This document shows, in pieces, positions 18,666-49,377 of a stretch of 64,000 nucleotides of DNA. The translations under genes were made by a program, and so were the position numbers. Position 1 is the first letter of the stretch; every line of letters starts with the position of its first letter. Where the stretch lies: the IMG/VR virus record IMGVR_UViG_3300029267_004162, positions 124,001 to 188,000 of that record. One strand, written 5' to 3'. The notes beneath the pieces were generated by a model. The model did no database searches. It was not told the DNA's origin and worked only from the letters and a program-made list of their open reading frames with translations.

Positions 18666-19254
18666 ATACCGCCGGTGCTTCCTGACGTAATAATTGCCGA
18701 GCCTGGATCATAAGACCGCGTATTTGGGGATGAGCGGCCGGGGCACACCTCAAATCAAAAATGTGCAACCACTCCCGGAAGTTAGCCGTACAAACGATCT
18801 CGGTTTTGAGACAGATAGGCAATGCGGCTCGCGCTATTTGAGGCTTAGCTCCAGCTTCTCTCAATTGCTCATAAGCGTGAACTGAGGCTTTTACGCCTTC
18901 CAACCAGATCGCGTGCTGTGTATCATCCAACCCAGGCGGCTCGATAACTCTCACACCACTAGAACGGCCATCACCGGCATAATCGCAGTACCGCGTAGAC
19001 TCTTGAGAATACGCTGCAAGACGATGGCGCACCAACTCATGAGTTACGCCGCGATCACAGATGAATCTCATGCCAGCTACAGCGTGTTCAAGCACAGACA
19101 TGTGCCCCCGCTTCTTAATCATCAGCACAAACTTGCCGGGGTCTCCCTGTGATTCCGATTTATAACACGTCCTACCGGCCTTCTCGATTACCTGGAGTGC
19201 ATTTGGGGTGATGCTCTCCAGTGTTACTGACGGTTTTATGATTTCATATGACAT
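18625..19254 (-). CDS. thyX: FAD-dependent thymidylate synthase
   Basis: GHMSVLEH, RGVTHELVRHRLAAYSQESTRY, ARAALP, NFREWLH...LRC...AHPQIR. Confidence 0.96.
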   Translation of the reverse strand: MSYEIIKPSVTLESITPNALQVIEKAGRTCYKSESQGDPGKFVLMIKKRGHMSVLEHAVAGMRFICDRGVTHELVRHRLAAYSQESTRYCDYAGDGRSSGVRVIEPPGLDDTQHAIWLEGVKASVHAYEQLREAGAKPQIARAALPICLKTEIVCTANFREWLHIFDLRCAPAAHPQIRGLMIQARQLLRQEAPAVFGDPEVRSNYART

Positions 19255-21485: not shown

Positions 21486-23356
21486 TCTACTGATCGGAGA
21501 AAATCTTCTTCTCCGATTACGGTCGTACCCAATTTTCGAGCTTTTTGAGCTTTGGTGCTGGTACTGTTGGGGTCAGCCATTACCAAGTAATCAAGACCCT
21601 TTGACACGCTGCCCTTGACTTCTCCACCATTCTGCTCCACCAGAGCTTGTAATTCCTTTCGAGGACGACTAGCGGCACCAGTGAAACAATAAGATTTCCC
21701 AGCCAAGGAACCACCCACGACTTCTTCCTTCTCAGCTTCTACCACCGTTACGGTCAACAGCCTTGATAGGTTGGTAAGCGTGTTCTTTCGACCCTGAATC
21801 CCTCGTGCAATGGTTTTAGCCTTAGTTTCTTGGAAACCAGGAAACTCCAGTAATTGTTCCTCAGTCAGAGCGAGAAATTTATCCACCGTGTCTACACCAA
21901 GGGATACGAGATTAGCCGCTTCAGTACGACCTAACATATGAATAGACACTGAACCCACCAAGTCGTGCAAATCACACTTCCGAGATTTATCTAGTTCTCG
22001 CATGATCTTCGCGGCCATCTTTTTTCCAACGCCTGCGTCAACCAAATCAGAAGTAGACATTTTGTACAACTTCGTAACCGTTCTGATGCCGGCTCCCCAC
22101 AGTTGAGCCAAAGTCTTATCCCCGATGTAGAGGATATTCCTAGCCTTAATCCATCTGTGTAACCTAGCCATTAAAACATCTTCGCATTTCCCCGGACGGG
22201 CACATTTTAATAATGGCCCGACTTGTTTGATAGGCCCGCCACAGCTTGGGCATTTTTTACAGGTGATGACCTTTCTGGTTTTACCCTTCCTGACTCGACG
22301 AACACAATAGGGAATCACATCCCCAGATCGGATCACTTCAATGGTATCCCCTATCTGCACATCCAACCGTTTGATCTCGGCTTGATTGTGAAGAGTCACG
22401 CTGGTTATGGTAGTACCCCCAACTGCCACCGGCTGAACCTTCCCAACCGGGGTTAAGCGACCCTGAGAACCCACCTGCCAATCGACTCGGTCCAAAACCG
22501 TATGACCACCTTGTGGAGGAAATTTCCACGCCCTAGCCCAGTACGGACGGCCATGCCTCTCACCAAGATGCTCTTGTTGAGTTAGAGAATCGACCTTCAC
22601 CACCGCCCCATCGATCTCAAAACGATTGGAGTCCCGCGAAGCCAGGATTTTAGCATATGCCTTCTTGGCACCTGCAAAGTCACAGGACACGGTGGATACC
22701 GCATCGAATCCATGATCCTGCAACCACTTGATCTTCCGAGTTTCAGTGGGAAGATCAACCCCCACAAGATCGAACGCAACGCATCGAATGCTAGCAGCCC
22801 CCACAGCGTCTAGCCTTCTGACCAGACCAGCCGCAGCATTCCTGGGGTTGGATTTCCCAGAAAAATTCTGCTTCCATTCTTTGATCGGCAGCAACGCCTC
22901 ACACCTAACCGATACAGACAGGGACGATGACAACTTCTTAGGGAGACCTTTTGCCTTCCGGATCGTGTGAGTGACGTTTTCTCCGATTGCCCCATCCCCT
23001 CGCGTGACGGCACGTACGAATTTGCCCCGTTCATAGATCAACTCAATACTGATACCATCCAGTTTATCCTGAACAACCAGAGCGGGAGTTTTCATCGCCA
23101 GCAACCGGTACCACTTGATGAATTCCCCTTCCGAGTGAAGATTGTTCAATGAACCCATTGGGATCTGATGCTGGGTCTTCTCCAGCGGGGAGTCCACGCT
23201 CGGCGTGGCCCCAATCTCCTTTAGAAAGGGGTTTCCAGGGTCTTCTTTCTGCAGGGACGCCCGGAGTTCATCGAAACGCGCATCGGACATGACGGGAGAG
23301 CCATCATAATAGGCCTGTGAGGCTGAACGCAATAGCCGCTCTAGTTTCGCTTCCAT
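21482..23356 (-). CDS. ligA: NAD-dependent DNA ligase
   Basis: YYDG...SDARFD, KLDG, TRGDG...GENVT, NPRNAAAG, IDGAVVK, TLHN, RSGDVIP, Cys4 Zn finger, C-terminal BRCT. Confidence 0.97.
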   Translation of the reverse strand: MEAKLERLLRSASQAYYDGSPVMSDARFDELRASLQKEDPGNPFLKEIGATPSVDSPLEKTQHQIPMGSLNNLHSEGEFIKWYRLLAMKTPALVVQDKLDGISIELIYERGKFVRAVTRGDGAIGENVTHTIRKAKGLPKKLSSSLSVSVRCEALLPIKEWKQNFSGKSNPRNAAAGLVRRLDAVGAASIRCVAFDLVGVDLPTETRKIKWLQDHGFDAVSTVSCDFAGAKKAYAKILASRDSNRFEIDGAVVKVDSLTQQEHLGERHGRPYWARAWKFPPQGGHTVLDRVDWQVGSQGRLTPVGKVQPVAVGGTTITSVTLHNQAEIKRLDVQIGDTIEVIRSGDVIPYCVRRVRKGKTRKVITCKKCPSCGGPIKQVGPLLKCARPGKCEDVLMARLHRWIKARNILYIGDKTLAQLWGAGIRTVTKLYKMSTSDLVDAGVGKKMAAKIMRELDKSRKCDLHDLVGSVSIHMLGRTEAANLVSLGVDTVDKFLALTEEQLLEFPGFQETKAKTIARGIQGRKNTLTNLSRLLTVTVVEAEKEEVVGGSLAGKSYCFTGAASRPRKELQALVEQNGGEVKGSVSKGLDYLVMADPNSTSTKAQKARKLGTTVIGEEDFLRSVE

Positions 23357-23372
23357 TTCTTTCTCCTACCCC

Positions 23373-23400
23373 ATTAACCACAAGAGGGGCTTTTTGTCAA
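23373..23400 (-). promoter_or_regulatory. putative sigma70-type promoter of ligA
   Basis: Minus strand TTGACA-aaaagcccctcttgtg-GTTAAT, followed by AGGAG RBS; spacer shares CCCCTCTTGTGGT with the promoter at 32778. Confidence 0.55.
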
Positions 23401-23633
23401 GTATCAGCCACCCATTTCTAGGTTAAGTAACCCCAGGTCGACCCCGGCGTCGAGTGCCTCGATCCAATGATACATTTGAGTCGTGGTCAAACGCGGCCCA
23501 ATATCGCGAAGCCCACCTTCAGGACTCTGTAGGACAATGCGTGGACGGTTGGCCGTCCAATCAAACCGCAGGTCAAGGCCAGTTTTGTTGCATACAACGT
23601 TTAGTGCTTGTTCAATGTCGGCTCTGGTTCTTC

Positions 23634-23921
23634 TCATCTTGATTCCTCCTCGGTTGGCACGGTGTCTCGATCTGAACCACAATCGGGATCAAACTTTGCC
23701 CAGTGCGTCACTTTGTCTTGCGTTCTCTGATCTAACCGCTGCCATGCGTTAGACAATTGATTAGGACCACCGAACGAACCATCGGGCGTTTCTGGCATGG
23801 GGCTATCATCACGTACCATTGCAGCCCACAACGCACGATACGTTGTATCATCTGTACCTGCTTTGGTACACTCGGCGATTTGGTCCAACGTCCAATCAGC
23901 CCAATTCTCAGGATAACTCAT
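23634..23921 (-). CDS. hypothetical protein
   Basis: Packed ORF with ATGA overlap. Confidence 0.55.
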   Translation of the reverse strand: MSYPENWADWTLDQIAECTKAGTDDTTYRALWAAMVRDDSPMPETPDGSFGGPNQLSNAWQRLDQRTQDKVTHWAKFDPDCGSDRDTVPTEEESR

Positions 23922-24664
23922 GCCGATCCCTCTTTATCGTACTCCCGTTTCCGCCATTCCTCAACCAAATCAATCACGGCCTCGCCCAACTCGCGGTCTG
24001 CGTATCTCAGCGAGATAGATAAGGTTCCCTCCCCGTGACACTGCACTTCATGGTATGGAAAAGGCGTGCGCAACATCTCCGAAGAACGAGACAACTCAGC
24101 CCCGGCGATGCGATTCCTGGTAGCGTTGACGAGTTCCTCAAGATCAGAGGTATACGCGTTATGTGCAGTAACACGATTGGTAACGGTTTCCCAAGCGGAA
24201 TCGAAATCAGGCAGAAACCGGCGGGAAACATCTCTGGATATGGCTTCTGGAGAACGAGTAGCTGCGACAGTAATAGAAACGTTGATGTCCATGTGATGGT
24301 GGGAATTACCGGTTCCCGTTGGCCAATCTCCATCGATCACGAGACGGCTTGGCTTTCTCCACTCAGGACGGATGATAAAGTGTCGTTCAGCGAGATCGAC
24401 AAAAACTGCTCCCCACATAGAACCCACGCTTTTCACGAGGATCTTTAGTGCGAAACATCCACCAGAAGCCTTGGCGATGGCCGCGTAAAACTTACGACAG
24501 GCTGCCTTGTTGTGACCCACGTCGAACATGCTGCTCATCTCAATCCTCTCAGTACCGTTGATGCCCCGAATTTGAAAGGCCGGCCATCTTGGCGAACGGC
24601 CAGTATTGGATAGCGTCTGGCTTTTATCGACAAACCAGTAATGGTGTACGTGTTTCCACGACAC
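23918..24664 (-). CDS. hypothetical protein (true start probably near 24538)
   Basis: Long ORF; its N-terminal part overlaps the preceding gene. Confidence 0.55.
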   Translation of the reverse strand: MSWKHVHHYWFVDKSQTLSNTGRSPRWPAFQIRGINGTERIEMSSMFDVGHNKAACRKFYAAIAKASGGCFALKILVKSVGSMWGAVFVDLAERHFIIRPEWRKPSRLVIDGDWPTGTGNSHHHMDINVSITVAATRSPEAISRDVSRRFLPDFDSAWETVTNRVTAHNAYTSDLEELVNATRNRIAGAELSRSSEMLRTPFPYHEVQCHGEGTLSISLRYADRELGEAVIDLVEEWRKREYDKEGSA

Positions 24665-39514: not shown

Positions 39515-40453
39515 TTACTCGGAAAGAAGAAGAAAAAGACCATTACGAAGGCTATCTAGATCGGGCTGAAACCGCTCTTTGACTTCTTCATCAACCCAGT
39601 TCAAAGCGCGGTGAAGCCCGTGGGAACCAGGCAGGAGATTAGCTCGACAGCGGCTGGCCAATACTCTGGCATAACCAGACGTAATATTGCTACCATCGGG
39701 CTTGGTAATGGTATCTTCGATATGCTTGGAATTACCCCCAGATAAGACAATGCTAAACGCCATTAATTGACTTCTGTTTAAACTGGCCAACGCTTTGGCG
39801 ATTTGAAGGGGGTGTGCTTCGGGCTCAGAAAGTGCCCAATCAAAATGCTTCCCCAAATGGTGTACTCGGCTAGCGAGCAGAGTTTCGAACAATTTGAAGA
39901 CGGGGACTGATTCGGATCGCCTTTGTAAAATTTGTGCCAAACCTCTTTTTTGAAGTCGGCCTTCATTCATAAAGGCGAGATAGTCCAATGCGGCCACTGC
40001 TTCAGGATATTCCCTTATCTCTGTGATAGCTTCAATAACACCATCTTCAATTTCGCAACCTAGAGCAATATACCGTTTTCGCAATCGCCGGATTAAAACA
40101 CCCCCCGATTCTCCGGTTAATTGAAAACAGGTGTACTCCGCATCCTGAGCTTCTTTAATTTTTTCCTCAGGCAACCGCATTAACAGACAGTATCCTAGTT
40201 TCGCTTCCTTTTTTGCCCATCTATCAATTTTCTTTAGGTCAAAACCAGCGAGAACGACGTGGTGATCATGAAAAATACTGGGACCATATTTACCCTCACC
40301 ATGAGTTTGGAGAGCAAAACCGTCCTCTTCTAACCCAGCCAGAAGACGAGCCCAAACGTAATCAGATACTGGGGAGATGAGGTAATAGGGTAATTCCCTC
40401 TCAGTCAAATGACGAATAAGGGCTTTTTGGCTAACCGTCTGTGGTTTAGCCAT
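39515..40453 (-). CDS. divergent DNA Pol III delta (HolA)-like clamp-loader subunit
   Basis: Size ~310 aa; helical pattern (GCEIEDGVIEAI...VFKLFETLL...HPLQIAKAL...LNWVDEEVK); a holB-like gene and a clamp-like gene are nearby. Confidence 0.55.
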   Translation of the reverse strand: MAKPQTVSQKALIRHLTERELPYYLISPVSDYVWARLLAGLEEDGFALQTHGEGKYGPSIFHDHHVVLAGFDLKKIDRWAKKEAKLGYCLLMRLPEEKIKEAQDAEYTCFQLTGESGGVLIRRLRKRYIALGCEIEDGVIEAITEIREYPEAVAALDYLAFMNEGRLQKRGLAQILQRRSESVPVFKLFETLLASRVHHLGKHFDWALSEPEAHPLQIAKALASLNRSQLMAFSIVLSGGNSKHIEDTITKPDGSNITSGYARVLASRCRANLLPGSHGLHRALNWVDEEVKERFQPDLDSLRNGLFLLLSE

Positions 40454-40976
40454 CCCCAGATTCCTCGCCTGTGTAGTATTGGACCCGCCAATACCCATAA
40501 TCTGCGGCTACTTCACATGCTTTAAATATGGGTTGGATTTTTTCACGCTCAGTGGTAAGTATCCGAGTCGTTAACACCCCGTTGGTACCCCTTCTCCGGT
40601 TCTTACGAGCTTGTAACACTTTGGACGTAGGGTCTAGCATCTCTATCTCAACTGCTGAGTTATCAACCAACCAAGTCCCGAGGTTAGAGGCAAGCCACCA
40701 TACTTGATCCACACTCCGGGGGAACCCGTCTACTGCCAAAGGTTTTTCAAGAGCAACGGCTAGTAGAACGGATTCTTTTACCAGGGAACGAACCATGTTT
40801 TCTACCTGGGGATTAGCTAGGTGTGATCCATGTTTGACGAAGAAGTCTTCTCCTAAAAGCACTCGCATCAGCTTTCCACATGACAGAACAATCGTTTCAG
40901 AATTATCGCTTTTGTGGTGATCACACCGATACGATTTTCCGCTACAGGGTAAACCAGTTATGAAGGTTAGCTGCAT
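40446..40976 (-). CDS. adenylate-kinase-like NMP kinase
   Basis: ITGLPCSGKS P-loop, LSCGKLMR, DGFPRSVDQ. Confidence 0.8.
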   Translation of the reverse strand: MQLTFITGLPCSGKSYRCDHHKSDNSETIVLSCGKLMRVLLGEDFFVKHGSHLANPQVENMVRSLVKESVLLAVALEKPLAVDGFPRSVDQVWWLASNLGTWLVDNSAVEIEMLDPTSKVLQARKNRRRGTNGVLTTRILTTEREKIQPIFKACEVAADYGYWRVQYYTGEESGDG

Positions 40977-40986
40977 CCGTCATTCC

Positions 40987-42048
40987 TTAATCCGGGAGTT
41001 GCCTAAGTTCCACTTCATCATTTTTGGGGCCTGTTCCCAGCATCCACAGTTTACACCCGTGAGCATTTAGACACTGCTGCAGTTTTTCGTAAAAAGGCTC
41101 TGGGTCTGTTAGATAATTAACGAAATTCAAAAACATGTAATTTGGACGAACGTGTTGTAGGAATCTTTCTAGTTGCAAAAAGCTGAAATCAAAGACTCTC
41201 CGTACTCGACCTGTGACGGTCGTGTACTCTTCTATTTGTTGACCAATCTTTTCACTAAGGTGCGCCCAGGTTGTTTCTTCATGGTCTGAGTAATAGGGGC
41301 CTGAGGTCGATCCTTCCAGACTACCGACTCGAATGGGATAGGTTCGAATAATTCCTACTATGTCACCATAGTAATCTGGATGGGGTGGAATACCAGCGTT
41401 ATCAAAAGCACGTCCTACCAAACAATCCCGACTGGTGGTGTAGGGGTATTGATGCCCAAAGTTAATGCCGAGATCAAATCCTTGAGCAGTTTCAGAAATC
41501 ACCGCGGCCCCTGCCAACAAAGATTCTCTGACCAGTGTGCCAGTATCAGCAACAAATTTGGCAACACGCAGATCATGTTTAGCAATATTGCTATCTTTGG
41601 GGTCGCGCCGCATCTTACGTATCACGGCTTCAGCACTACCCTGCATGGTGGAACTGATACCAGTCAGTCTTTGTTTCTCAACGTCAGCATCAGCTTGTGA
41701 CAAGACACACGCACGAGGGTGAATAGCCAGGGTGAAATCTCCCCGTTCTTTTTGGGCCGCTGCAACTTCCATTAGTAGGCGATCCACGTCAAATACAGCA
41801 TGAGGTCCAATTATCACGGTGTGGACAGTGGGGAACCATGCGCCTACTGGCAAGGCTTTAGACACATGTTTTTCGCCGGAAACTGGGCCATAAAAAGAAT
41901 GGCCTGCATTGGGCATGTTGTCCCCAACTACTACAGAAACTTGGGGATTCTGCTCGAAGATAAAGGCCAGCAATTTGCCTTTACCGGTTGATCCCCATTG
42001 CCCGTCAATAACTATTGAAAACTTGCCTGTGGGAAACATACTCATCAT
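40987..42048 (-). CDS. purZ: PurZ-type adenylosuccinate synthetase homologue (N6-succino-2-amino-2'-deoxyadenylate synthase)
   Basis: QWGSTGKG (Ser where PurA has the Asp of GDEGKG), NAGH, AQGFDL, YPYTTSR, RTYPIRV, SGPYYSD, TTVTGRVRRVF, FLNFVNY (NFxN rather than PurA TKxD); short 353-aa form. Confidence 0.85.
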   Translation of the reverse strand: MMSMFPTGKFSIVIDGQWGSTGKGKLLAFIFEQNPQVSVVVGDNMPNAGHSFYGPVSGEKHVSKALPVGAWFPTVHTVIIGPHAVFDVDRLLMEVAAAQKERGDFTLAIHPRACVLSQADADVEKQRLTGISSTMQGSAEAVIRKMRRDPKDSNIAKHDLRVAKFVADTGTLVRESLLAGAAVISETAQGFDLGINFGHQYPYTTSRDCLVGRAFDNAGIPPHPDYYGDIVGIIRTYPIRVGSLEGSTSGPYYSDHEETTWAHLSEKIGQQIEEYTTVTGRVRRVFDFSFLQLERFLQHVRPNYMFLNFVNYLTDPEPFYEKLQQCLNAHGCKLWMLGTGPKNDEVELRQLPD

Positions 42049-42699
42049 TCACCAACCTTCCTGGTCTTCTTCCGAAAAAGAATCCCCTACCCCAACATCA
42101 AAATGAATAAACGACCGGCGATGATACTCGGTCATTCCATACAAACGAAGAGCCTCAACATGACTACTGTCGTAATACCCATGATTCACATCCCACCCAT
42201 ACACGGGATGACAGGTGTGTAATGCATCCATAAAACTGTCTCTGGCGGTCTTGGCCATAATTGAGGCACAAGCAACAGCAAATTCAGATGAATCTCCTTT
42301 AATAACGCACTTATCAACCGGTGCATCACACAGGGGCCTATTGCCATCGAACACCACCAGAGTTTGATTTCCCAGTGGTGAAAGAGAAAACAATTGCCTC
42401 AAACACCGCTCGGCTGCTTTTGATATGGCGGGGTTAATCCCCTCTTTGTCAATATAGCTGGCGTCCACCATTTCAACAGAATAAGGTAGTTTATCAGCGA
42501 TCCATTGCGCTGCGTGTTGTCGTTCAGTTAGGGTCAATTCTTTGCTGTCATTTATTTGTGGAACAGATACCCCGACTTGATCCATTTTTAACAGAGTGGC
42601 TCCCACCGCCACCGGACCAGCGATAGACCCCCGGCCCGTTTCATCGACCCCAATCACAACCTCGTGGCCATCAAGCGTTTCAGTGGTAATACTCAACAC
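42049..42699 (-). CDS. rnhB: ribonuclease HII
   Basis: GVDETGRGSIAGPV, DSKEL, FDGN, IKGD...ASIMAKTARD, NHGY, HRRSF. Confidence 0.93.
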   Translation of the reverse strand: MLSITTETLDGHEVVIGVDETGRGSIAGPVAVGATLLKMDQVGVSVPQINDSKELTLTERQHAAQWIADKLPYSVEMVDASYIDKEGINPAISKAAERCLRQLFSLSPLGNQTLVVFDGNRPLCDAPVDKCVIKGDSSEFAVACASIMAKTARDSFMDALHTCHPVYGWDVNHGYYDSSHVEALRLYGMTEYHRRSFIHFDVGVGDSFSEEDQEGW

Positions 42700-43004
42700 G
42701 TGACTACCACCCTTTAGGATACTCGTATGTGCGAAACGTACCACCGTCCAGATCGTCACCCAGATCGTCGGATGAACATCGCGGGTAAACGGCCACATAT
42801 GTGTCGCCACTAGCAATCAGTCGGGTAAGCACGTCTGTGGTTACAACCGCGAAGGTGTTATCGTCGAAGCCAATCCCAAGCTCCACTACTCGCCCACCAA
42901 CACGATTCGCATGGCGATGAGCGTTATCGATGTCCTCGAAACCCACTGTCTTGAACGTGTCGTTTTTCGTCTTCGTCGTCATTTTCTTGTTATCTTGGTT
43001 CATA

Positions 43005-44027
43005 TTACCCATCCACCGCCGTAACAATTTTTCTGGCCTCATCTTTAACCACTTGAGTTTTCTCTTCGGAAAGGTCGTACCCACCCTGTTTAAGTATGTC
43101 TTCTATCCCACTCAAAGGGTCTTCTACAGTCGCCGATTGGATTTCAATGTCTGTTTTAACAGCGGTGGTTTCCACTTTTGTGACCCTCTTATCTTCACCT
43201 AGGTCAATTGTTACGCCTTGTTTGACCTTGACTTTCACGGTGTAAGAAGGGGGAATTTCGGCCAAGCGACTATTTAGTTGATCTTGAGTCTCTACCTCTA
43301 TGGTTATAAGTGGATAGTCCTGGGGAATGTTAACTGGTTTTGCTTTAGGACCGGATTTCGTCCACTTGACCAGTAAGTAACCCCGCTTAAGAGACTTCTC
43401 TCCAAATTTGGTTTGATAGGCAGACCCCGGATAAGCAGCATTGTTTATTCGCTGTCTAGAGTGGAAATCTCCCAACGCGATATAGGGAATAGAAGAATAG
43501 GGGGATAAATCCAGCCCCCGGTAGGATTTCACCCCATTGTCATACGCCCCACCTTTTACATCAGCATGAATCACCAAGATATCGGGGTCTTCACCCACCA
43601 AATCCGAGACACATTCATTGCGGTGCCCCGGAACGACCGCGACCTTTAACCCCCACAAATCATACACCTTGGGGTCATTTACGAGTATGACATTCGAAAG
43701 CTTACCCTGAAGAGGACGCAAATGATCCAAAACCGTCGTAGTGGGGTTCTGTTGATCATGGTTTCCCGGAATAATGATGCAAGGCACACCAAGAGTGTCT
43801 AATTCCAGAAGAAAACGAATTACCGCCCCGATTTCTTCTGGAGTGGGGTTTTTAGTGTGCCACAGATCCCCAGCAGAAATTACTCCGTCAACTCCTTTTG
43901 AACGAAAGGATTCTACTAGCCTATCGCAAGCGGATACTGTCCGATCCAGATAAGAGAATTCGCCCCCCATTGAGAATAAACCTTTCCCGGATCCGAAATG
44001 CTGGTCAGCACAGTGAGCTATTAACAT
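43005..44027 (-). CDS. sbcD: SbcD/Mre11-like nuclease
   Basis: ADQH, AGDLWH, PGNHD, IHA, ALGDFH, YPGS...FGE. Confidence 0.88.
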   Translation of the reverse strand: MLIAHCADQHFGSGKGLFSMGGEFSYLDRTVSACDRLVESFRSKGVDGVISAGDLWHTKNPTPEEIGAVIRFLLELDTLGVPCIIIPGNHDQQNPTTTVLDHLRPLQGKLSNVILVNDPKVYDLWGLKVAVVPGHRNECVSDLVGEDPDILVIHADVKGGAYDNGVKSYRGLDLSPYSSIPYIALGDFHSRQRINNAAYPGSAYQTKFGEKSLKRGYLLVKWTKSGPKAKPVNIPQDYPLITIEVETQDQLNSRLAEIPPSYTVKVKVKQGVTIDLGEDKRVTKVETTAVKTDIEIQSATVEDPLSGIEDILKQGGYDLSEEKTQVVKDEARKIVTAVDG

Positions 44028-44419
44028 TGTTCCGGAACCCACTTCATGTCTTGCCATCGATATACAACCAAACTGGATTCACCTTCTAATTTCAAGATGA
44101 CCGAATTTGGCTGGGTTTCTATGGGGGTGACCTCCAACATATGCTGCAAGGAGGGGTTGGGCCCGTGCCACATACCAAATTCTCCTGGCTTATGCTCGCA
44201 CCCTATCGCGTACACACATTCGTGAGGAGGATCACTAGTACGAAAACTAACCGCTTGTTCAAACTCTTGAACCGCCCTAAGAGGAACTCTATTTATAACA
44301 GTTCTCGCTAAACAGGCATCAACAGTTTGACCCCCAGCACCTGATTGGCTACGAGGACATTTGGCAAGAATGGTGAGAAATTTAGTTGCTGCTTCTAAGA
44401 GATTGGACATGATCATCAC
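44021..44419 (-). CDS. hypothetical protein
   Basis: Packed ORF. Confidence 0.5.
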   Translation of the reverse strand: MMIMSNLLEAATKFLTILAKCPRSQSGAGGQTVDACLARTVINRVPLRAVQEFEQAVSFRTSDPPHECVYAIGCEHKPGEFGMWHGPNPSLQHMLEVTPIETQPNSVILKLEGESSLVVYRWQDMKWVPEQC

Positions 44420-44898: not shown

Positions 44899-45669
44899 TC
44901 ACTTTATCATTCGAACGATGGGGTAATCATCATGGATTATTGATGATGTAATTTGACAAAGAGAAGACCAAGATAAAACATGCGACTCACTGAACCCAGC
45001 GTGTTTAGCCATTTTTACCAATTCCCCCGGACTAAAAACACCCAGCTTAATTGCCTCGGATGTCTTGTGCAGGTTTTTCCCAACCCGAGTGTTATCAGAG
45101 GCAATACTCATGAAAGCAGAAGTAGCATTGGATACCCAGTCTATATCTAACCCTGACAATTTAATGGACGCTTTGATATCTTTCCGCGACCTACTCCAGG
45201 AATAATTCTGAAGCGCGTGTAAACGAAGGTACCCATCGTAGATATGACCAAAATATACCAGATACGATCCTCCCTTACGTAAAGCGGCGTGCACTTTACG
45301 TAAATGTTTAACCATAGCGGATACGGTGGGGAGTTTGTATTGCATCAACAGGATATTCGTCGTAATGGCTAAATTTATCCCTTGTGGACTTTCCCCTGGT
45401 TCCAATATTTCAACAGAAAAATGGTCAAAGATGCCCTCTTCTGCCCACTTATAATGCACATATTCGGAAGCCTGTAAACAAGAGGGAGTTAAACTAGCCT
45501 TACCCAATTCCCGGTAAAGAACATCTTTAGTATAATCCCCAGTAACCGATATAACTTCCCAGACACTACTCGGGGTTAAACTAGATGCCGCCAAAAGTTT
45601 ATCAGTCACCTCAGGAATGGAAGCGTGATCGACAAACAACAATTCGTAAGTGTCGGGGCACCGATCCAT
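44899..45669 (-). CDS. degenerate class I methyltransferase-like protein
   Basis: VWEVISVTG at the motif I position; HLRKVHAALRKGGSYLV; FSPGELVKMAKHAGFS. Confidence 0.55.
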   Translation of the reverse strand: MDRCPDTYELLFVDHASIPEVTDKLLAASSLTPSSVWEVISVTGDYTKDVLYRELGKASLTPSCLQASEYVHYKWAEEGIFDHFSVEILEPGESPQGINLAITTNILLMQYKLPTVSAMVKHLRKVHAALRKGGSYLVYFGHIYDGYLRLHALQNYSWSRSRKDIKASIKLSGLDIDWVSNATSAFMSIASDNTRVGKNLHKTSEAIKLGVFSPGELVKMAKHAGFSESHVLSWSSLCQITSSIIHDDYPIVRMIK

Positions 45670-46283
45670 TAAAGCAATGACCCCCTAGTCGAACTAACTC
45701 GTTCGATAAATTCCGCTTTAACATGACCCTCTACGAAAGCCCCCAAAACAGTAGTGGTGGTTATTCGAGACGTGGGACTTTGCACTCCTCGACAACTCAT
45801 GCAATTATGCATTGCCTCTACCATCACAGCGGTTCCCCTTGCATGAACACTATTGTGTAAGGTCGTGGCTAGCTCATAGGTGTAGGATTCTTGCAGGATG
45901 GGCTGCTTAGCCATAGTAGTCGCGAGGCGAGTTAGTTTACTAATACCCAGTATTCGGAATTCTTGCCTTTCTGCGGCTGGAACGTAGGCTATGTGAACCA
46001 AAGCCATAACCGGAAGAAGGTGGTGGGGACACATAAAATTCACGATATTTTGCGTACTGCAAATCATTGCATCATACACCCCGTTTCCTTGATCTGGGAA
46101 TGAACAAGAAAGAATTTTGGCGACTTCTTTATTGATCTGATCTTTCGACCACACCATTTCATGCAGGGCTTTAGCAGCTCGCGAATCAGTACCTTTGAAG
46201 TTATATCCGGAGTGGCCCATCTCGGCTAAACCTTCTAGGATTAGCGCGTACCCCGTTTGAAATTTGTCTTCGTTTGATGACAT
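45669..46283 (-). CDS. folE: GTP cyclohydrolase I
   Basis: MCPHHLLP, GISKLTRL, LQESYT, HNCMSCRGV; Zn ligands intact. Confidence 0.93.
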   Translation of the reverse strand: MSSNEDKFQTGYALILEGLAEMGHSGYNFKGTDSRAAKALHEMVWSKDQINKEVAKILSCSFPDQGNGVYDAMICSTQNIVNFMCPHHLLPVMALVHIAYVPAAERQEFRILGISKLTRLATTMAKQPILQESYTYELATTLHNSVHARGTAVMVEAMHNCMSCRGVQSPTSRITTTTVLGAFVEGHVKAEFIERVSSTRGSLL

Positions 46284-46285
46284 AA

Positions 46286-47557
46286 TTATCCTTTAACCTC
46301 AGTCGTGGCCACGATTAAATTGGCAGAGCCATCTTCAGCAAACACCATTCTACCGTCAGAACGAAGTCGAAGAGTCTTGTCTACTACCAACGTTGAACCC
46401 GCCTTTAGCACGAGATCCCACGCTGTACGATTAGTCCGCATCGTTTCTCTGTAGTTTTTACACCCCTTAACTACAGTGTCGGCAGCTTTTTTCTTGGGTT
46501 CTTCTTTTTCCGTCTTTTTGCCAGGCTTCTTAATGGGTTCCTTGTCTATTTCCACCTTTTCAGTAGCGGCAAAGCTTTCCCCAACCTTTCCCAAATTCAG
46601 GCTAGACCTAGCCTGGGAATCTTCGGCAAAGAGAGAAAACACTTTTTCTTCTCGACGCAGTTCAATGGCTGGGTCCCCCGGTAAACAACTACACGCCATG
46701 TTGATAGCAGTGGCCATACTGGGGCAGAATACTACCAGATCATTTTTGCCTTTAAACTTCTTATCATTACGACGCTTCATGATTGATTGCACGTCTTTGA
46801 ACCGATCCGATTCAGGAAGAGCGTGCACAATTTTCCACCGATCAGTGTGGATAGCCACGCAAGAATCTTCTTCTTCACTGGAAAGAAGCAGTTTGATTTT
46901 TGACCCCTTCCCACCACGAATCAAATGAGGCCACGTTGCTAACCAATCAGCCGGAACCAAAATTTGACCCTTGCCAAGGGTCTTTGATAAATGAACCCGG
47001 CGGAAAAAGGCACTATGAGAATCAGTTGCCTCGATAGTGATTTCCTTGCCGTTTATGCTGATTCTAACTAATGAATCAGGGCTAAACGTAGTGATAGATT
47101 CAGCGAATGTACACGCTGATGGAATTGATCCAATTAACTCAGTGGCCGATTCAATTGGAATCACCAATTCTTGTGGCTCAGAAACCTTTAACCTATTCCA
47201 ACTTTCATCGCCGCCTTGACCTACCTCTCGCGTGTACTGCTTATTGCGAATGGTAAGTGTTGTATCATCAGTGGCTCGGAATTCGTAATTCCCCGCCATA
47301 TCAGGCAAGGACTGAATAAAGGACCCGTCGATTACGATAGGGGTCATGTCTTTTGATAACCAGTCGACTTCATTCGGCTTTAGGACTGTCTTTCCATAAG
47401 CCTTCTCTCCAACCATTTCGATTACCAACCATCTGCCATCTTTCTTTTTCAAGACAGAGAACCGAGTATTAATAGTGACGGTACCAGCCACCGAGACGGT
47501 TCGAGAAAGGATCGACATGATTGACTTGATCAGTGCAGTTTCTACTGTAAATTCCAC
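46286..47557 (-). CDS. divergent DNA polymerase sliding clamp (DnaN-like)
   Basis: MEFTVET...LSRTVS N-terminus; ITIEATDSHS (cf. VATDGHRL); ~420 aa; replication context. Confidence 0.55.
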   Translation of the reverse strand: MEFTVETALIKSIMSILSRTVSVAGTVTINTRFSVLKKKDGRWLVIEMVGEKAYGKTVLKPNEVDWLSKDMTPIVIDGSFIQSLPDMAGNYEFRATDDTTLTIRNKQYTREVGQGGDESWNRLKVSEPQELVIPIESATELIGSIPSACTFAESITTFSPDSLVRISINGKEITIEATDSHSAFFRRVHLSKTLGKGQILVPADWLATWPHLIRGGKGSKIKLLLSSEEEDSCVAIHTDRWKIVHALPESDRFKDVQSIMKRRNDKKFKGKNDLVVFCPSMATAINMACSCLPGDPAIELRREEKVFSLFAEDSQARSSLNLGKVGESFAATEKVEIDKEPIKKPGKKTEKEEPKKKAADTVVKGCKNYRETMRTNRTAWDLVLKAGSTLVVDKTLRLRSDGRMVFAEDGSANLIVATTEVKG

Positions 47558-47744: not shown

Positions 47745-48266
47745 TTATCCTATCAACTGGGAAAACCCAAATTCATCATCGGGCTCGGACTCATCAGATT
47801 TACCTAACTCATAATCCATCAGGCCATTTTCTATTGATGTGATTTCACAGTGCTCTCCCTGGTAAATAACGACATCCCCCCTCTTCTTCCCCAAAAGCGT
47901 TTGACCAAAGGGAGATTCATAACTTATCACGCCCCCATCGGGGTTGGAGTCAAACGGCCCCAGTACCCTAAAGACAATCGTTTTTGATCCCTTGAAAGTG
48001 ACCTTTGAACCAACCCCCACAACATCGGTTGGAACCTCTGCTTCATCAAGAGGCACAGCCGCAGACAACGATGTTTGTAAATCCTGGAGTCTCTTGGAAA
48101 GAAAATCTCGTTCTTCTATGGCGAATTTCCATTCAGAGTTTTCACTCAGATCTCCGTGTTCAGCCGCTTCACCAATCCTTTTAATCACCGCAGGAAGATC
48201 AACCATTTGCATCTTCTCAGCAAGCAATAACTTGGCATCGATTGCTTGCGTACTATGATAACTCAT
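47745..48266 (-). CDS. greA: transcription elongation factor GreA/GreB
   Basis: HGDLSENSEW (acidic tip intact), VGVGSKV, ISYESPFGQTLLGKKRGD. Confidence 0.9.
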   Translation of the reverse strand: MSYHSTQAIDAKLLLAEKMQMVDLPAVIKRIGEAAEHGDLSENSEWKFAIEERDFLSKRLQDLQTSLSAAVPLDEAEVPTDVVGVGSKVTFKGSKTIVFRVLGPFDSNPDGGVISYESPFGQTLLGKKRGDVVIYQGEHCEITSIENGLMDYELGKSDESEPDDEFGFSQLIG

Positions 48267-48853
48267 TTGGACTCCGTCACTTGAGGAGACAAAGTGAGTT
48301 TCCAATCTCCAAGAGGGAGTTCTACTTGACCATCGTAATCAGGAAAACCTGGGGAAGGGCCATCACCACATTCCCATATATCTGATAACCCCCGATATTT
48401 GCCTTTCAGGTCCATCCCAAACCCAATCACGAACTTGCCCGAAACATCAAGACTAGAGTAATTACCAACATGCCCTGACTTCTTCGTGTCCAGTAAGAAA
48501 CACGCGTCTGCATCTCGAAATCCAAAATCCGCTAGCATGGTCAGAATCTTATCATAAGTCTCGCCTGTGTTTATGATGGCATCAATTACTAGCACAGAAT
48601 AATCGGCTGGGTTGCTTGGCGGTTCCCAATCGTGTGCAATGGTTACCCCACGATCAGCAGAATAAGTAGCCGTCCAAACCGGACGAATTATCATGTCAAT
48701 TCGCAAAGTCCTGAATAGTTCCATTACAAAGAGACTGGCGCCCCACAAGACCGGAACTACAACCACCTTTTCTCCACGGTAGGCATCGTTTATTTGATTG
48801 GCGATTGTATCGATGTGAGTGACAATGTCTCTATGTTCTAGAAATTTTTTCAT
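48263..48853 (-). CDS. HPRT-like phosphoribosyltransferase, paralogue B (altered PRPP loop)
   Basis: VLWGASLF, VLVIDAIINTGET, FVIGFGMDLKGKYRGL. Confidence 0.85.
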   Translation of the reverse strand: MKKFLEHRDIVTHIDTIANQINDAYRGEKVVVVPVLWGASLFVMELFRTLRIDMIIRPVWTATYSADRGVTIAHDWEPPSNPADYSVLVIDAIINTGETYDKILTMLADFGFRDADACFLLDTKKSGHVGNYSSLDVSGKFVIGFGMDLKGKYRGLSDIWECGDGPSPGFPDYDGQVELPLGDWKLTLSPQVTESK

Positions 48854-49377
48854 GACCTTTCATCCTGACCCTTACATTCTTCGATTATGCATATGTCTGG
48901 TAAGCCCCGATATCTACCACCCATGTCCAATCCAAACCCTACTACAAATTTATCCGGGATAACAAATCCAGTATAATTTGGGCAACGGCTAGATTTCTCT
49001 TTGTCCAACAAAAAACACGTTCTTGTGTCGTGAAACCCGGAACCTTTCAACAAAGACACTACGCCATTGATGGTTTTACCAGAGTCCAAAATGTCGTCTA
49101 CTATTAACGCCGAACAGGCGGCGGGATCTATTTGGGATAAATCCCAATCATGTTTGATAGATAAATTACCCTGAGAAGTCCCAGAATAAGAAGTAGCCCA
49201 TATTGGAAGAATAGTCACGGTAGTTTTTAAACGATTAAATAGCTCCATCGAAAAAGTGCAAGCACCCCACAAAACGGGAACAACTATTAGTCTTCGGCCC
49301 TCAAAGTCTGAGTCAATCTGACTAGCTAATTGATCGATACGAACAAGAATCTGCTGGTGTTCCAATAGTTTTTTCAA
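48850..49377 (-). CDS. hpt: hypoxanthine/guanine phosphoribosyltransferase, paralogue A
   Basis: VLWGACTF, ATSYSG, LIVDDILDSGKT, FVVGFGLDMGGRYRGLP. Confidence 0.9.
   Translation of the reverse strand: MKKLLEHQQILVRIDQLASQIDSDFEGRRLIVVPVLWGACTFSMELFNRLKTTVTILPIWATSYSGTSQGNLSIKHDWDLSQIDPAACSALIVDDILDSGKTINGVVSLLKGSGFHDTRTCFLLDKEKSSRCPNYTGFVIPDKFVVGFGLDMGGRYRGLPDICIIEECKGQDERS

Follow-up and report, generated by a model that had tools for sequence, protein, structure and literature searches.

A phage GTP cyclohydrolase I gene as the predicted entry step of a scattered preQ1-type 7-deazaguanine pathway in a genome that also encodes PurZ and PurB

Phage systems for 7-deazaguanine DNA modification combine FolE, QueD, QueE and QueC, in some cases with QueF, and a DpdA transglycosylase (Hutinet 2019; Cui 2023; PMC10516641). 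DpdA-family proteins are the stated signature of this modification: published work finds a DpdA in every phage with 7-deazaguanine DNA and argues that the modification is post-replicative (PMC10516641). Methylated dPreQ1 exists in nature, and the responsible enzyme, DpdM (DUF3109/YkgJ-like), has a unique non-Rossmann fold with a CxxxCxxCC metal motif (Cui 2023; PMC10516641). A folE placed far from the que cluster has been reported for jumbo phage TRS5 (PMC8878043). Separately, Z-genome phages such as S-2L and phiVC8 use PurZ, accompanied by DatZ and MazZ, to introduce 2-aminoadenine (PMC8342488). A third precedent comes from the toyocamycin and tubercidin clusters of Streptomyces, in which synthesis of preQ0 or CDG is followed by a phosphoribosyltransferase, a PurA-like enzyme, PurB and a HAD hydrolase, TubE being a proven CDG phosphoribosyltransferase (PMC6112128; bioRxiv 10.64898/2026.04.15.718813).

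Here, we analyzed a 64,000-nucleotide stretch (the window; positions 124,001 to 188,000 of IMG/VR record IMGVR_UViG_3300029267_004162) of the 262,650-bp genome of an uncultured phage, rated 100% complete by CheckV. A first-pass annotation had noted in this window an intact folE whose stop overlaps the start of a degenerate methyltransferase-fold gene, located between a clamp and sbcD and about 3-4 kb from purZ. This observation proved correct. The ORF at window positions 45669-46283 (-) encodes a 204-aa GTP cyclohydrolase I that matches PF01227 at E 1.3e-33 (116 bits against a cut-off of 27, covering profile positions 21-177 of 179) and phrog_2197 at E 1.6e-36. NCBIfam FolE models score 1e-34 but below their cut-offs, and therefore this is a divergent member of the family. 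Alignment to solved GTP cyclohydrolases I (E about 1e-19) showed that the C-x-H-H and H-x-C zinc and catalytic residues, the substrate Glu (QE) and the SKL Ser are all kept: MCPHHLLP aligns to MCEHHLVP, and EAMHNCMSCRGV aligns to EATHMCMxxRGV. The folE start lies 2 nt after the stop of a 423-aa beta sliding clamp gene at 46286-47557 (-), which was identified by phrog_947 (E 5.6e-4), by language-model features (0.96, with 201 shared features) and by TM scores of 0.76/0.85 to DnaN models. The orthologue of this clamp in the record labeled L010 sits beside a clamp loader. On the downstream side, the segment is bounded by an sbcD-like nuclease subunit gene (350 aa) at 43005-44057 (-), matching PF00149 at E 5e-10 and phrog_100 at E 4e-38. 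A promoter and terminator scan around the genes gave results no better than shuffled sequence.

The TAA stop of folE (45671-45669) shares one base with the ATG (45669-45667) of a 256-aa ORF at 44899-45669 (-), here called P0001, forming TAATG. No match to P0001 was found in Pfam, PHROGs or NCBIfam, in a PDB profile search, or by tblastn against 50,697 phage records, and two word-index searches returned only P0001 itself and a second protein, P0003. The latter, encoded in another phage contig, is its one full-length relative (E 2.8e-12 against 1.8 billion representatives), and this conservation at protein level shows that P0001 is a real gene and not a chance ORF. Language-model features (0.94, all top hits being methyltransferases) and the ESM Atlas model (pTM 0.64; TM 0.60-0.63 to UbiE and Methyltransf_11/25 clusters) place P0001 among class I SAM methyltransferases, and P0003 scores 0.97, with 208 shared features, for the same fold. 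Confidence in this fold is only moderate, because an AlphaFold2 model built with the single relative was unusable (pLDDT 31). Where the glycine-rich GxGxG of motif I is expected P0001 reads EVISVTG, and it reads TPS at the position of the acidic residue that ends strand 2; P0003 reads ELFPGTA and FDNS at these positions, which were assigned by eye. The motif II acid and the motif IV Asp that P0003 keeps are lost in P0001. "Degenerate methyltransferase fold" is thus a fair description.

Whether P0001, which the first-pass annotation called coupled, is a functional partner of FolE is less certain. One could imagine a class I analogue of DpdM that N-methylates the aminomethyl group of preQ1 or dPreQ1. 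The one-base overlap, the predicted fold and the presence of QueF, which makes preQ1 with a free amine the expected product, are in line with this idea, and the only Pfam hint, which is not significant (E 0.15), is to the small-molecule amine N-methyltransferase family NNMT/PNMT/TEMT. However, in addition to the degenerate motifs, P0003 lies between a clamp and a dNMP-kinase-like gene with no folE, suggesting that the coupling may be positional. Identity with DpdM was rejected, since P0001 has only three Cys residues, none of the CxxxCxxCC motif, no DUF3109 match and a predicted Rossmann-type fold. The family has only two members among 15 billion proteins, and IMG/VR searches with the P0001 family and with the clamp returned only another copy of the same phage, so that the folE-P0001 arrangement was compared with just one 6.4-kb contig. 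We therefore consider a tailoring role in the pathway doubtful. Our best guess is that P0001 is a diverged SAM-dependent methyltransferase, or an inactive derivative of one, that belongs to the clamp-to-SbcD segment of this phage lineage and would be co-translated with FolE here without being an obligate partner.

Phage FolE is usually the first step of 7-deazaguanine DNA modification, and it had been proposed that the genome may modify both purines, an idea that would have fallen had no que or dpd genes been present elsewhere. Searching the rest of the genome revealed the preQ1 set outside of the window (genome coordinates): QueD at 210941-211393 (E 1.4e-28, with its CxxxHGH motif), QueE at 192320-193108 (best NCBIfam matches all QueE models, with CxxxCxxC), QueC at 106049-106822 (E 8e-60) and QueF at 103937-104398 (139 bits against the NCBIfam preQ1-synthase cut-off of 87). 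A 622-aa transglycosylase of the TGT/DpdA superfamily is encoded at 98692-100560. The interpretation of the first-pass annotation is thus partly supported: its main inference holds on genomic grounds, whereas the coupling of the methyltransferase-like gene and a hybrid base made through PurZ are not supported as written.

In the transglycosylase, DSGGxQ, LD-P, a catalytic Asp and CxCxxC...H are invariant across 8 homologues, and the C-terminus is Lys/Arg-rich. The family profile hits the archaeosine tRNA-guanine transglycosylase 1iq8 at E 3.8e-10, bacterial TGTs at about 1e-3 and the bacterial DNA-guanine transglycosylase 7ui4 at 0.016. BLASTP found no similarity to DpdA3 of Flavobacterium phage immuto_2-6A, and an AlphaFold2 model built with two relatives was unusable (pLDDT 39), so that the protein is placed here at superfamily level only. 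Its homologue in Achromobacter phage Motura lies inside a QueD-QueC-AsnB-TGT-QueE-FolE cluster. Because the best solved relative is a tRNA enzyme, and because ARAGORN reports a tRNA-Asn(GTT) candidate in the genome, the pathway could instead serve queuosine or archaeosine-type tRNA modification during infection. This appears unlikely. The candidate tRNA is atypical (90 nt) and only 6 tRNAs were found in all, the phage-encoded que/TGT systems examined in the cited work modify DNA (PMC10516641), and the que genes sit in replication modules, beside two clamps (which share no BLASTP similarity with each other) and near GyrA and DnaQ. The basic C-terminal tail also argues against a tRNA target.

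The first-pass annotation had left open that FolE supports ThyX through folate. GTP cyclohydrolase I is also the first folate enzyme, and thyX is indeed encoded 26 kb away (PF02511, E 2e-47; match at window 18670-19221 (-), genome 142670-143221). However, a search of the genome that did not extend to all of FolB, FolK and DHFR found no DHPS, the product of FolE has a dedicated consumer in QueD and a complete alternative sink in QueD, QueE, QueC and QueF, and none of the 50 PurZ contigs surveyed carries FolE. A folate role is therefore disfavored and seems very unlikely.

The purZ gene (353 aa) at window positions 40987-42048 (-), 3.6 kb from folE, encodes a succino-2-amino-deoxyadenylate synthase-like protein and matches phrog_1211 at E 2e-58. 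It scores 214 bits with the PurZ model NF038379, below its cut-off of 300 but against 117 bits or less for PurA models. The best solved matches are PurZ structures (6fm1/6fko, E 2e-59; 7odx, E 2.7e-40), against 2e-20 for PurA, and the P-loop reads GSTGKGK, with the PurZ-type Ser (S23 is listed as a PurZ-specific contact in PMC8342488). Directly downstream, at 40446-40976 (-), is a P-loop kinase-like protein (176 aa) that is a candidate (d)NMP kinase on weak ADK and AAA_17 matches only (E 4e-4 to 3e-5). The genome also carries a phage PurB. No HD (DatZ), MazG (MazZ) or DUF550 (PF04447) match was found in the genome, and therefore full replacement of A by Z is uncertain. HD proteins are present in 29 of the 50 nearest PurZ contigs but in 0 of the 13 closest. 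Among the 50 nearest PurZ contigs, FolE was found in 0 and QueC in 0, and among 11 deazaguanine or TGT-like phage records PurZ was found in 0. The pairing of both pathways thus looks new, being absent from these 61 comparable phage genomes.

Two tandem HGPRT-like genes lie 2-3 kb upstream of folE. Paralogue 2 (175 aa; 48850-49377 (-)) has canonical active-site motifs: it matches TIGR01203 at E 7e-33, below cut-off, and the solved HGPRT 3o7m at E 1.6e-24, with the VDDILDSGKT, LLDK and GFGLD motifs aligned. Paralogue 1 (196 aa; 48263-48853 (-)) matches TIGR01203 at E 1.4e-21 and the solved HGPRT 6igs at E 8e-15. It is 44% identical to paralogue 2 but has changes in the PRPP loop (IDAIINTGET against VDDILDSGKT) and at the purine site (LLDT against LLDK), at positions that correspond to the Asp that protonates N7 and the Lys that reads O6 in HGPRT. 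These genes bear on the more speculative proposal of the first-pass annotation, that a deaza-dGMP is fed through PurZ to make an unreported base. In such a route, an HGPRT-like enzyme would attach CDG, preQ0 or preQ1 to PRPP, the nucleotide would be reduced to the deoxy form, and PurZ and PurB would convert it to a 7-deaza-2-aminoadenine nucleotide for incorporation by the polymerase. No GMP reductase was found, so that the 2-amino group would be kept. The toyocamycin and tubercidin clusters use exactly this logic, PurZ, PurB and a HAD hydrolase are all phage-encoded, and HGPRT genes are rare in phage records and absent from the closest PurZ relatives. On the other hand, the transglycosylase, with intact catalytic motifs, gives a simpler base-exchange route that needs no deaza-nucleotide, the genes are not clustered, and PurB co-occurs with PurZ in related large contigs that have no que genes, and thus belongs to ordinary Z synthesis. 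As any use of 7-deaza substrates by PurZ is conjectural, we regard this route as unlikely, although the gene set keeps it open.

It is thus reasonable to think, with fair though not full confidence, that folE encodes the first enzyme of a phage pathway to a preQ1-type 7-deazaguanine. In this model, FolE converts GTP to dihydroneopterin triphosphate, and QueD, QueE, QueC and QueF convert this in turn to CPH4, CDG, preQ0 and preQ1. The transglycosylase would then swap guanine in phage DNA for the free base after replication, perhaps after tailoring by the QueF-linked operon of a 239-aa protein, a QueC-like protein and a PurD-like ATP-grasp ligase. In parallel, PurZ, PurB and the kinase-like protein would make dZTP, so that 2-aminoadenine enters DNA during replication and both purines would be non-canonical. 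The HGPRT-like enzymes would most simply recycle the guanine released by base exchange into GMP, feeding both FolE (through GTP) and PurZ (through dGMP). This recycling has little comparative support, since HGPRT-like genes are absent from five of the six deazaguanine jumbo phage records examined, which also led us to reject a phosphoribosyltransferase as a general companion of such phages. While gene content, motifs and the rarity of the pairing are demonstrated here, every chemical step, the DNA target, the guanine recycling and any role of the methyltransferase-like protein are inferred from sequence, and modification of both purines, although probable, remains a prediction.

A bolder and only tentative possibility is that A is replaced by 2-aminoadenine and G by a 7-deazaguanine derivative not yet described, such as preQ1 whose aminomethyl group is acylated by the PurD-like ligase or methylated by P0001, the more extreme version being a 7-deaza-2-aminoadenine made through HGPRT, PurZ and PurB. 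Phage DNA modifications are normally described one base at a time. A genome equipped to replace A through a nucleotide-pool route and G through a post-replicative base-exchange route would be a natural example of combining both strategies, and such DNA should resist a very wide range of restriction and possibly CRISPR defenses. The same genome carries a non-specific endonuclease inside the que region, which would be safe only if its own DNA is protected. In addition, the jumbo-phage transglycosylase family, the PurD-like ligase and second QueC-like protein linked to QueF, the methyltransferase-fold orphan and the HGPRT paralogue with an altered purine site could each yield a new deazapurine chemistry useful for synthetic nucleic acids.

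Compared to the described phage 7-deazaguanine systems, this phage has the same enzyme set through QueF plus a TGT-superfamily transglycosylase, but the que genes are scattered over about 110 kb and do not form one cluster, and PurZ and PurB are present in the same genome. The transglycosylase belongs to a family found in jumbo phages such as Motura, PhiXhv, the vB_PpuM phages and GR7B. Immuto also has a phosphoribosyltransferase gene next to folE and recruits a purine-biosynthesis enzyme, the PurN-like DpdN, to tailor preQ1, and here the PurD-like ligase occupies the analogous place. The tailoring candidates (the QueC-like, ATP-grasp, 239-aa and methyltransferase-fold proteins) differ from DpdL, DpdM and DpdN, although P0001 would act in the same context as DpdM, a preQ1-producing phage with a gene that might methylate the product. 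With respect to Z-genome systems, the PurA-like enzyme has the PurZ-type GSTGKG loop and is 38% identical to phiVC8 PurZ, but the phage carries its own PurB and has a genome of 263 kb, against about 40 kb. Finally, the phage encodes the same kinds of enzyme families as toyocamycin and tubercidin biosynthesis, but without clustering, without a detected GMP reductase, with a PurA-like enzyme of the dGMP-using PurZ type, and with a transglycosylase that those antibiotic clusters lack.

The window covers bases 124001-188000 of a 262,650-bp virus record (G000, the whole genome) that CheckV rates 100% complete. Essentially the same genome was assembled several times at 262.5-262.6 kb, with different start points, from JGI and ENA metagenomes, and it has no near relative among 50,697 phage records. 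The genes around folE lie on the minus strand. Window 45669-46283 (-) encodes a 204-aa GTP cyclohydrolase I that matches PF01227 at E 1.3e-33 and phrog_2197 at E 1.6e-36. This FolE is divergent, being about 31-35% identical to other phage FolE proteins and scoring below the NCBIfam equivalog cut-offs. However, alignment to solved enzymes shows that the Cys-x-His-His and His-x-Cys zinc and catalytic residues, the substrate Glu and the SKL Ser are kept.

The TAA stop of folE shares one base with the ATG of a 256-aa ORF at 44899-45669 (P0001), and folE starts 2 nt after the stop of a 423-aa ORF (46286-47557) that is a beta sliding clamp (ESM features 0.96, structure TM 0.76/0.85 to DnaN). This clamp has an orthologue beside a clamp loader in a related contig. 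SbcD (43005-44057) and PurZ (40987-42048) lie downstream, and an RNase HII gene (42049-42816, minus strand) ends right at the purZ start. The first-pass annotation, which described an intact folE overlapping a degenerate methyltransferase-fold gene between the clamp and sbcD and close to purZ, is therefore accurate as an observation.

P0001 matched nothing in Pfam, PHROGs, NCBIfam, PDB sequences or phage records. An exhaustive HMMER pass over 1.84 billion cluster representatives found one true relative, P0003 (262 aa, 26% identity, full length, E 2.8e-12). The ESM Atlas places P0001 among class I SAM methyltransferases, both by features (0.94) and by its stored model (pTM 0.64; TM 0.60-0.63 to UbiE and Methyltransf_11/25 clusters), while P0003 scores 0.97 with 208 shared features and has a viral methyltransferase cluster as its best hit. 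In the pairwise alignment the glycine-rich SAM loop is degenerate in both proteins, reading EVISVTG in P0001 and ELFPGTA in P0003. Although these motifs were assigned by eye, P0003 keeps an FDNS and an FDLA element where P0001 has TPS and INLA, and P0001 is therefore the more eroded copy. It is not DpdM, as the known dPreQ1 methylase is a DUF3109 protein with a CxxxCxxCC motif and a non-Rossmann fold (PMC10516641).

P0003 lies on a 6.4-kb contig (L010) in the order clamp loader, clamp, P0003, dNMP-kinase-like gene, SbcD and nucleoside 2-deoxyribosyltransferase-like gene, without folE. The stretch L010:3194-5304, in which the P0001 homologue is followed by the last three genes, hints that the relative also manipulates its nucleotide pool. 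The neighbours of P0003 are 25-43% identical to the corresponding proteins of our phage. The conserved home of this gene is thus the clamp-to-SbcD segment, and in this phage folE sits between the clamp and it. The translational coupling is real, but it may be positional and not functional, and the functional link between the methyltransferase-like gene and FolE is weak.

The refutation check set for the proposal that FolE serves a second purine modification was whether que or dpd genes exist elsewhere in the genome, and such genes were found. QueC is encoded at G000 106049-106822 (E about 1e-58, above the TIGR00364 cut-off) and QueF at G000 103937-104398 (TIGR03139, 139 bits against a cut-off of 87). 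QueD (G000 210941-211393) has the CxxxHGH signature that separates QueD from DpdL (PMC10516641). QueE (G000 192320-193108) has CxxxCxxC, and its five best NCBIfam matches are all QueE models. Each of the two beta-clamp genes of this genome is immediately followed by a deazaguanine-pathway gene, namely the clamp at window 46286-47557 by folE with a 2-nt gap, and a DnaN-like gene at G000 209691-210944 (locus L008:5691-6944) by queD with an ATGA overlap. The two clamps show no BLASTP similarity to each other. Also near queD, a Macro-domain protein (G000 212637-213092; L008:8637-9092) lies next to a UvrD-like helicase. Between queC and queF lies a non-specific DNA/RNA endonuclease (Endonuclease_NS, E 9e-40; G000 104751-105587, minus strand; locus L007:10751-11587), which may degrade unmodified host DNA while modified phage DNA is spared.

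A 622-aa protein (P0005, G000 98692-100560) gave only weak TGT hits on its own, but it carries TDSGGYQ and CACPVC...HN. In an alignment with seven homologues the invariant positions are DSGG-Q, LD-P, a His-x-x-Gly, the Asp of a T-x-D-S-S element, and CxCxxC...H, which correspond to the substrate and catalytic aspartates and the zinc site of TGT. The profile of that alignment hits archaeosine tRNA-guanine transglycosylase 1iq8 at E 3.8e-10 over 300 positions, bacterial TGTs at about 1e-3, and the bacterial DNA-guanine transglycosylase 7ui4 at 0.016. The assignment does not extend to a DpdA subfamily, as BLASTP finds no similarity to DpdA3 of Flavobacterium phage immuto_2-6A and an AlphaFold model of the protein was unusable. 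Homologues occur in jumbo phages that also carry FolE, and in Achromobacter phage Motura the homologue sits inside a QueD-QueC-AsnB-TGT-QueE-FolE cluster. In addition, no dihydropteroate synthase is encoded in the genome. FolE therefore most likely feeds a preQ1-type 7-deazaguanine pathway whose product is exchanged into DNA.

Further tailoring of the product is possible. A tight operon outside the window (G000 101223-104398, minus strand; L007:7223-10398) begins with QueF, which overlaps a 239-aa orphan protein with no matches. That is followed by a second QueC-like protein resembling the QueC (C-terminal) half of the Gat-QueC archaeosine-type enzymes, and then by a 420-aa PurD-like ATP-grasp ligase with no homologue in the 50,697 phage records. 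Between the ATP-grasp gene and the transglycosylase gene sits a 179-aa TnpB-like fragment with OrfB_IS605 and Cas12f1-like TNB domains (G000 100572-101111, minus strand; L007:6572-7111). In immuto_2-6A a PurN-like enzyme formylates preQ1. A PurD-like amine-carboxylate ligase in the analogous position suggests acylation of the same amine, making the operon a candidate for a new preQ1 derivative, although this is inference only.

The PurA-like protein of this phage is closer to PurZ than to PurA. NF038379 scores 214 bits, below its cut-off of 300, against 117 or less for PurA models. The best solved matches are 6fm1/6fko at E 2e-59 and S-2L PurZ 7odx at 2.7e-40, compared to 2e-20 for PurA. The P-loop is GSTGKGK, as in phiVC8, and S23 is a PurZ-specific contact (PMC8342488). 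The phage also encodes an adenylosuccinate lyase, PurB (G000 23173-24516, plus strand; locus L021:1474-2817; TIGR00928, 312 bits). No HD (DatZ), MazG (MazZ) or DUF550 protein was found in the whole genome.

To survey co-occurrence, we took from IMG/VR the 50 nearest PurZ-bearing contigs of at least 22 kb, of which 20 are at least 90% complete. FolE was matched in 0 of 50 and QueC in 0 of 50. An HD (DatZ-like) protein was found in 29 of 50 but in 0 of the 13 closest, large-genome relatives, whereas most small PurZ phages have one. MazG was found in 10 of 50, and a short HGPRT-like PRTase in 0 of the 13 closest. A PurB-like lyase was present in 3 of 18 large relatives, the three being related PurZ contigs of 126-136 kb. 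PurB therefore belongs to the Z toolkit of this clade, and large PurZ phages may not rely on host PurB. In the reverse direction, none of 11 deazaguanine or TGT-like phage records has a PurA/PurZ match above cut-off. Full-text literature searches for purZ with deazaguanine, and for DpdA with aminoadenine, found no paper describing both in one genome. Within these samples, the pairing is unique to this phage.

Taken together, the interpretation offered in the first-pass annotation is supported in part. Its main inference, a second purine modification of the 7-deazaguanine type alongside PurZ, is well supported by gene content and is rare, whereas its more speculative suggestion, a hybrid base made by passing a deaza-dGMP through PurZ, remains speculation. 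What our analysis shows is sequence, that is, gene content, motifs and co-occurrence; the modified nucleosides, the enzymatic activities and the DNA target are all inferred from it.

Two tandem HGPRT-like genes bear on the hybrid idea. They lie 2-3 kb upstream of folE in the same gene string, at window 48850-49377 and 48263-48853 (minus strand), and are 44% identical to each other. A GreA/GreB-like transcription elongation factor, unusual for a phage, is encoded between them and the clamp (window 47745-48305, minus strand). The first HGPRT-like protein has canonical VDDILDSGKT, LLDK and GFGLD elements. The second, downstream copy reads IDAIINTGET and LLDT, and in terms of HGPRT enzymology it has lost one PRPP-loop acid, the Asp that protonates purine N7 and the Lys that reads O6. 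True phage HGPRT genes are rare. The simplest role for this pair would be salvage of the guanine released by base exchange. We consider the nucleotide-level hybrid route very unlikely, because the transglycosylase offers a complete and simpler one. However, PRTase, PurA-like, PurB and HAD enzymes are exactly the tailoring set of toyocamycin and tubercidin clusters, where a PRTase loads CDG or preQ0 onto PRPP. With no GMP reductase found in this phage, a PurZ-type enzyme acting by the same logic would give a 2-amino-7-deazaadenine.
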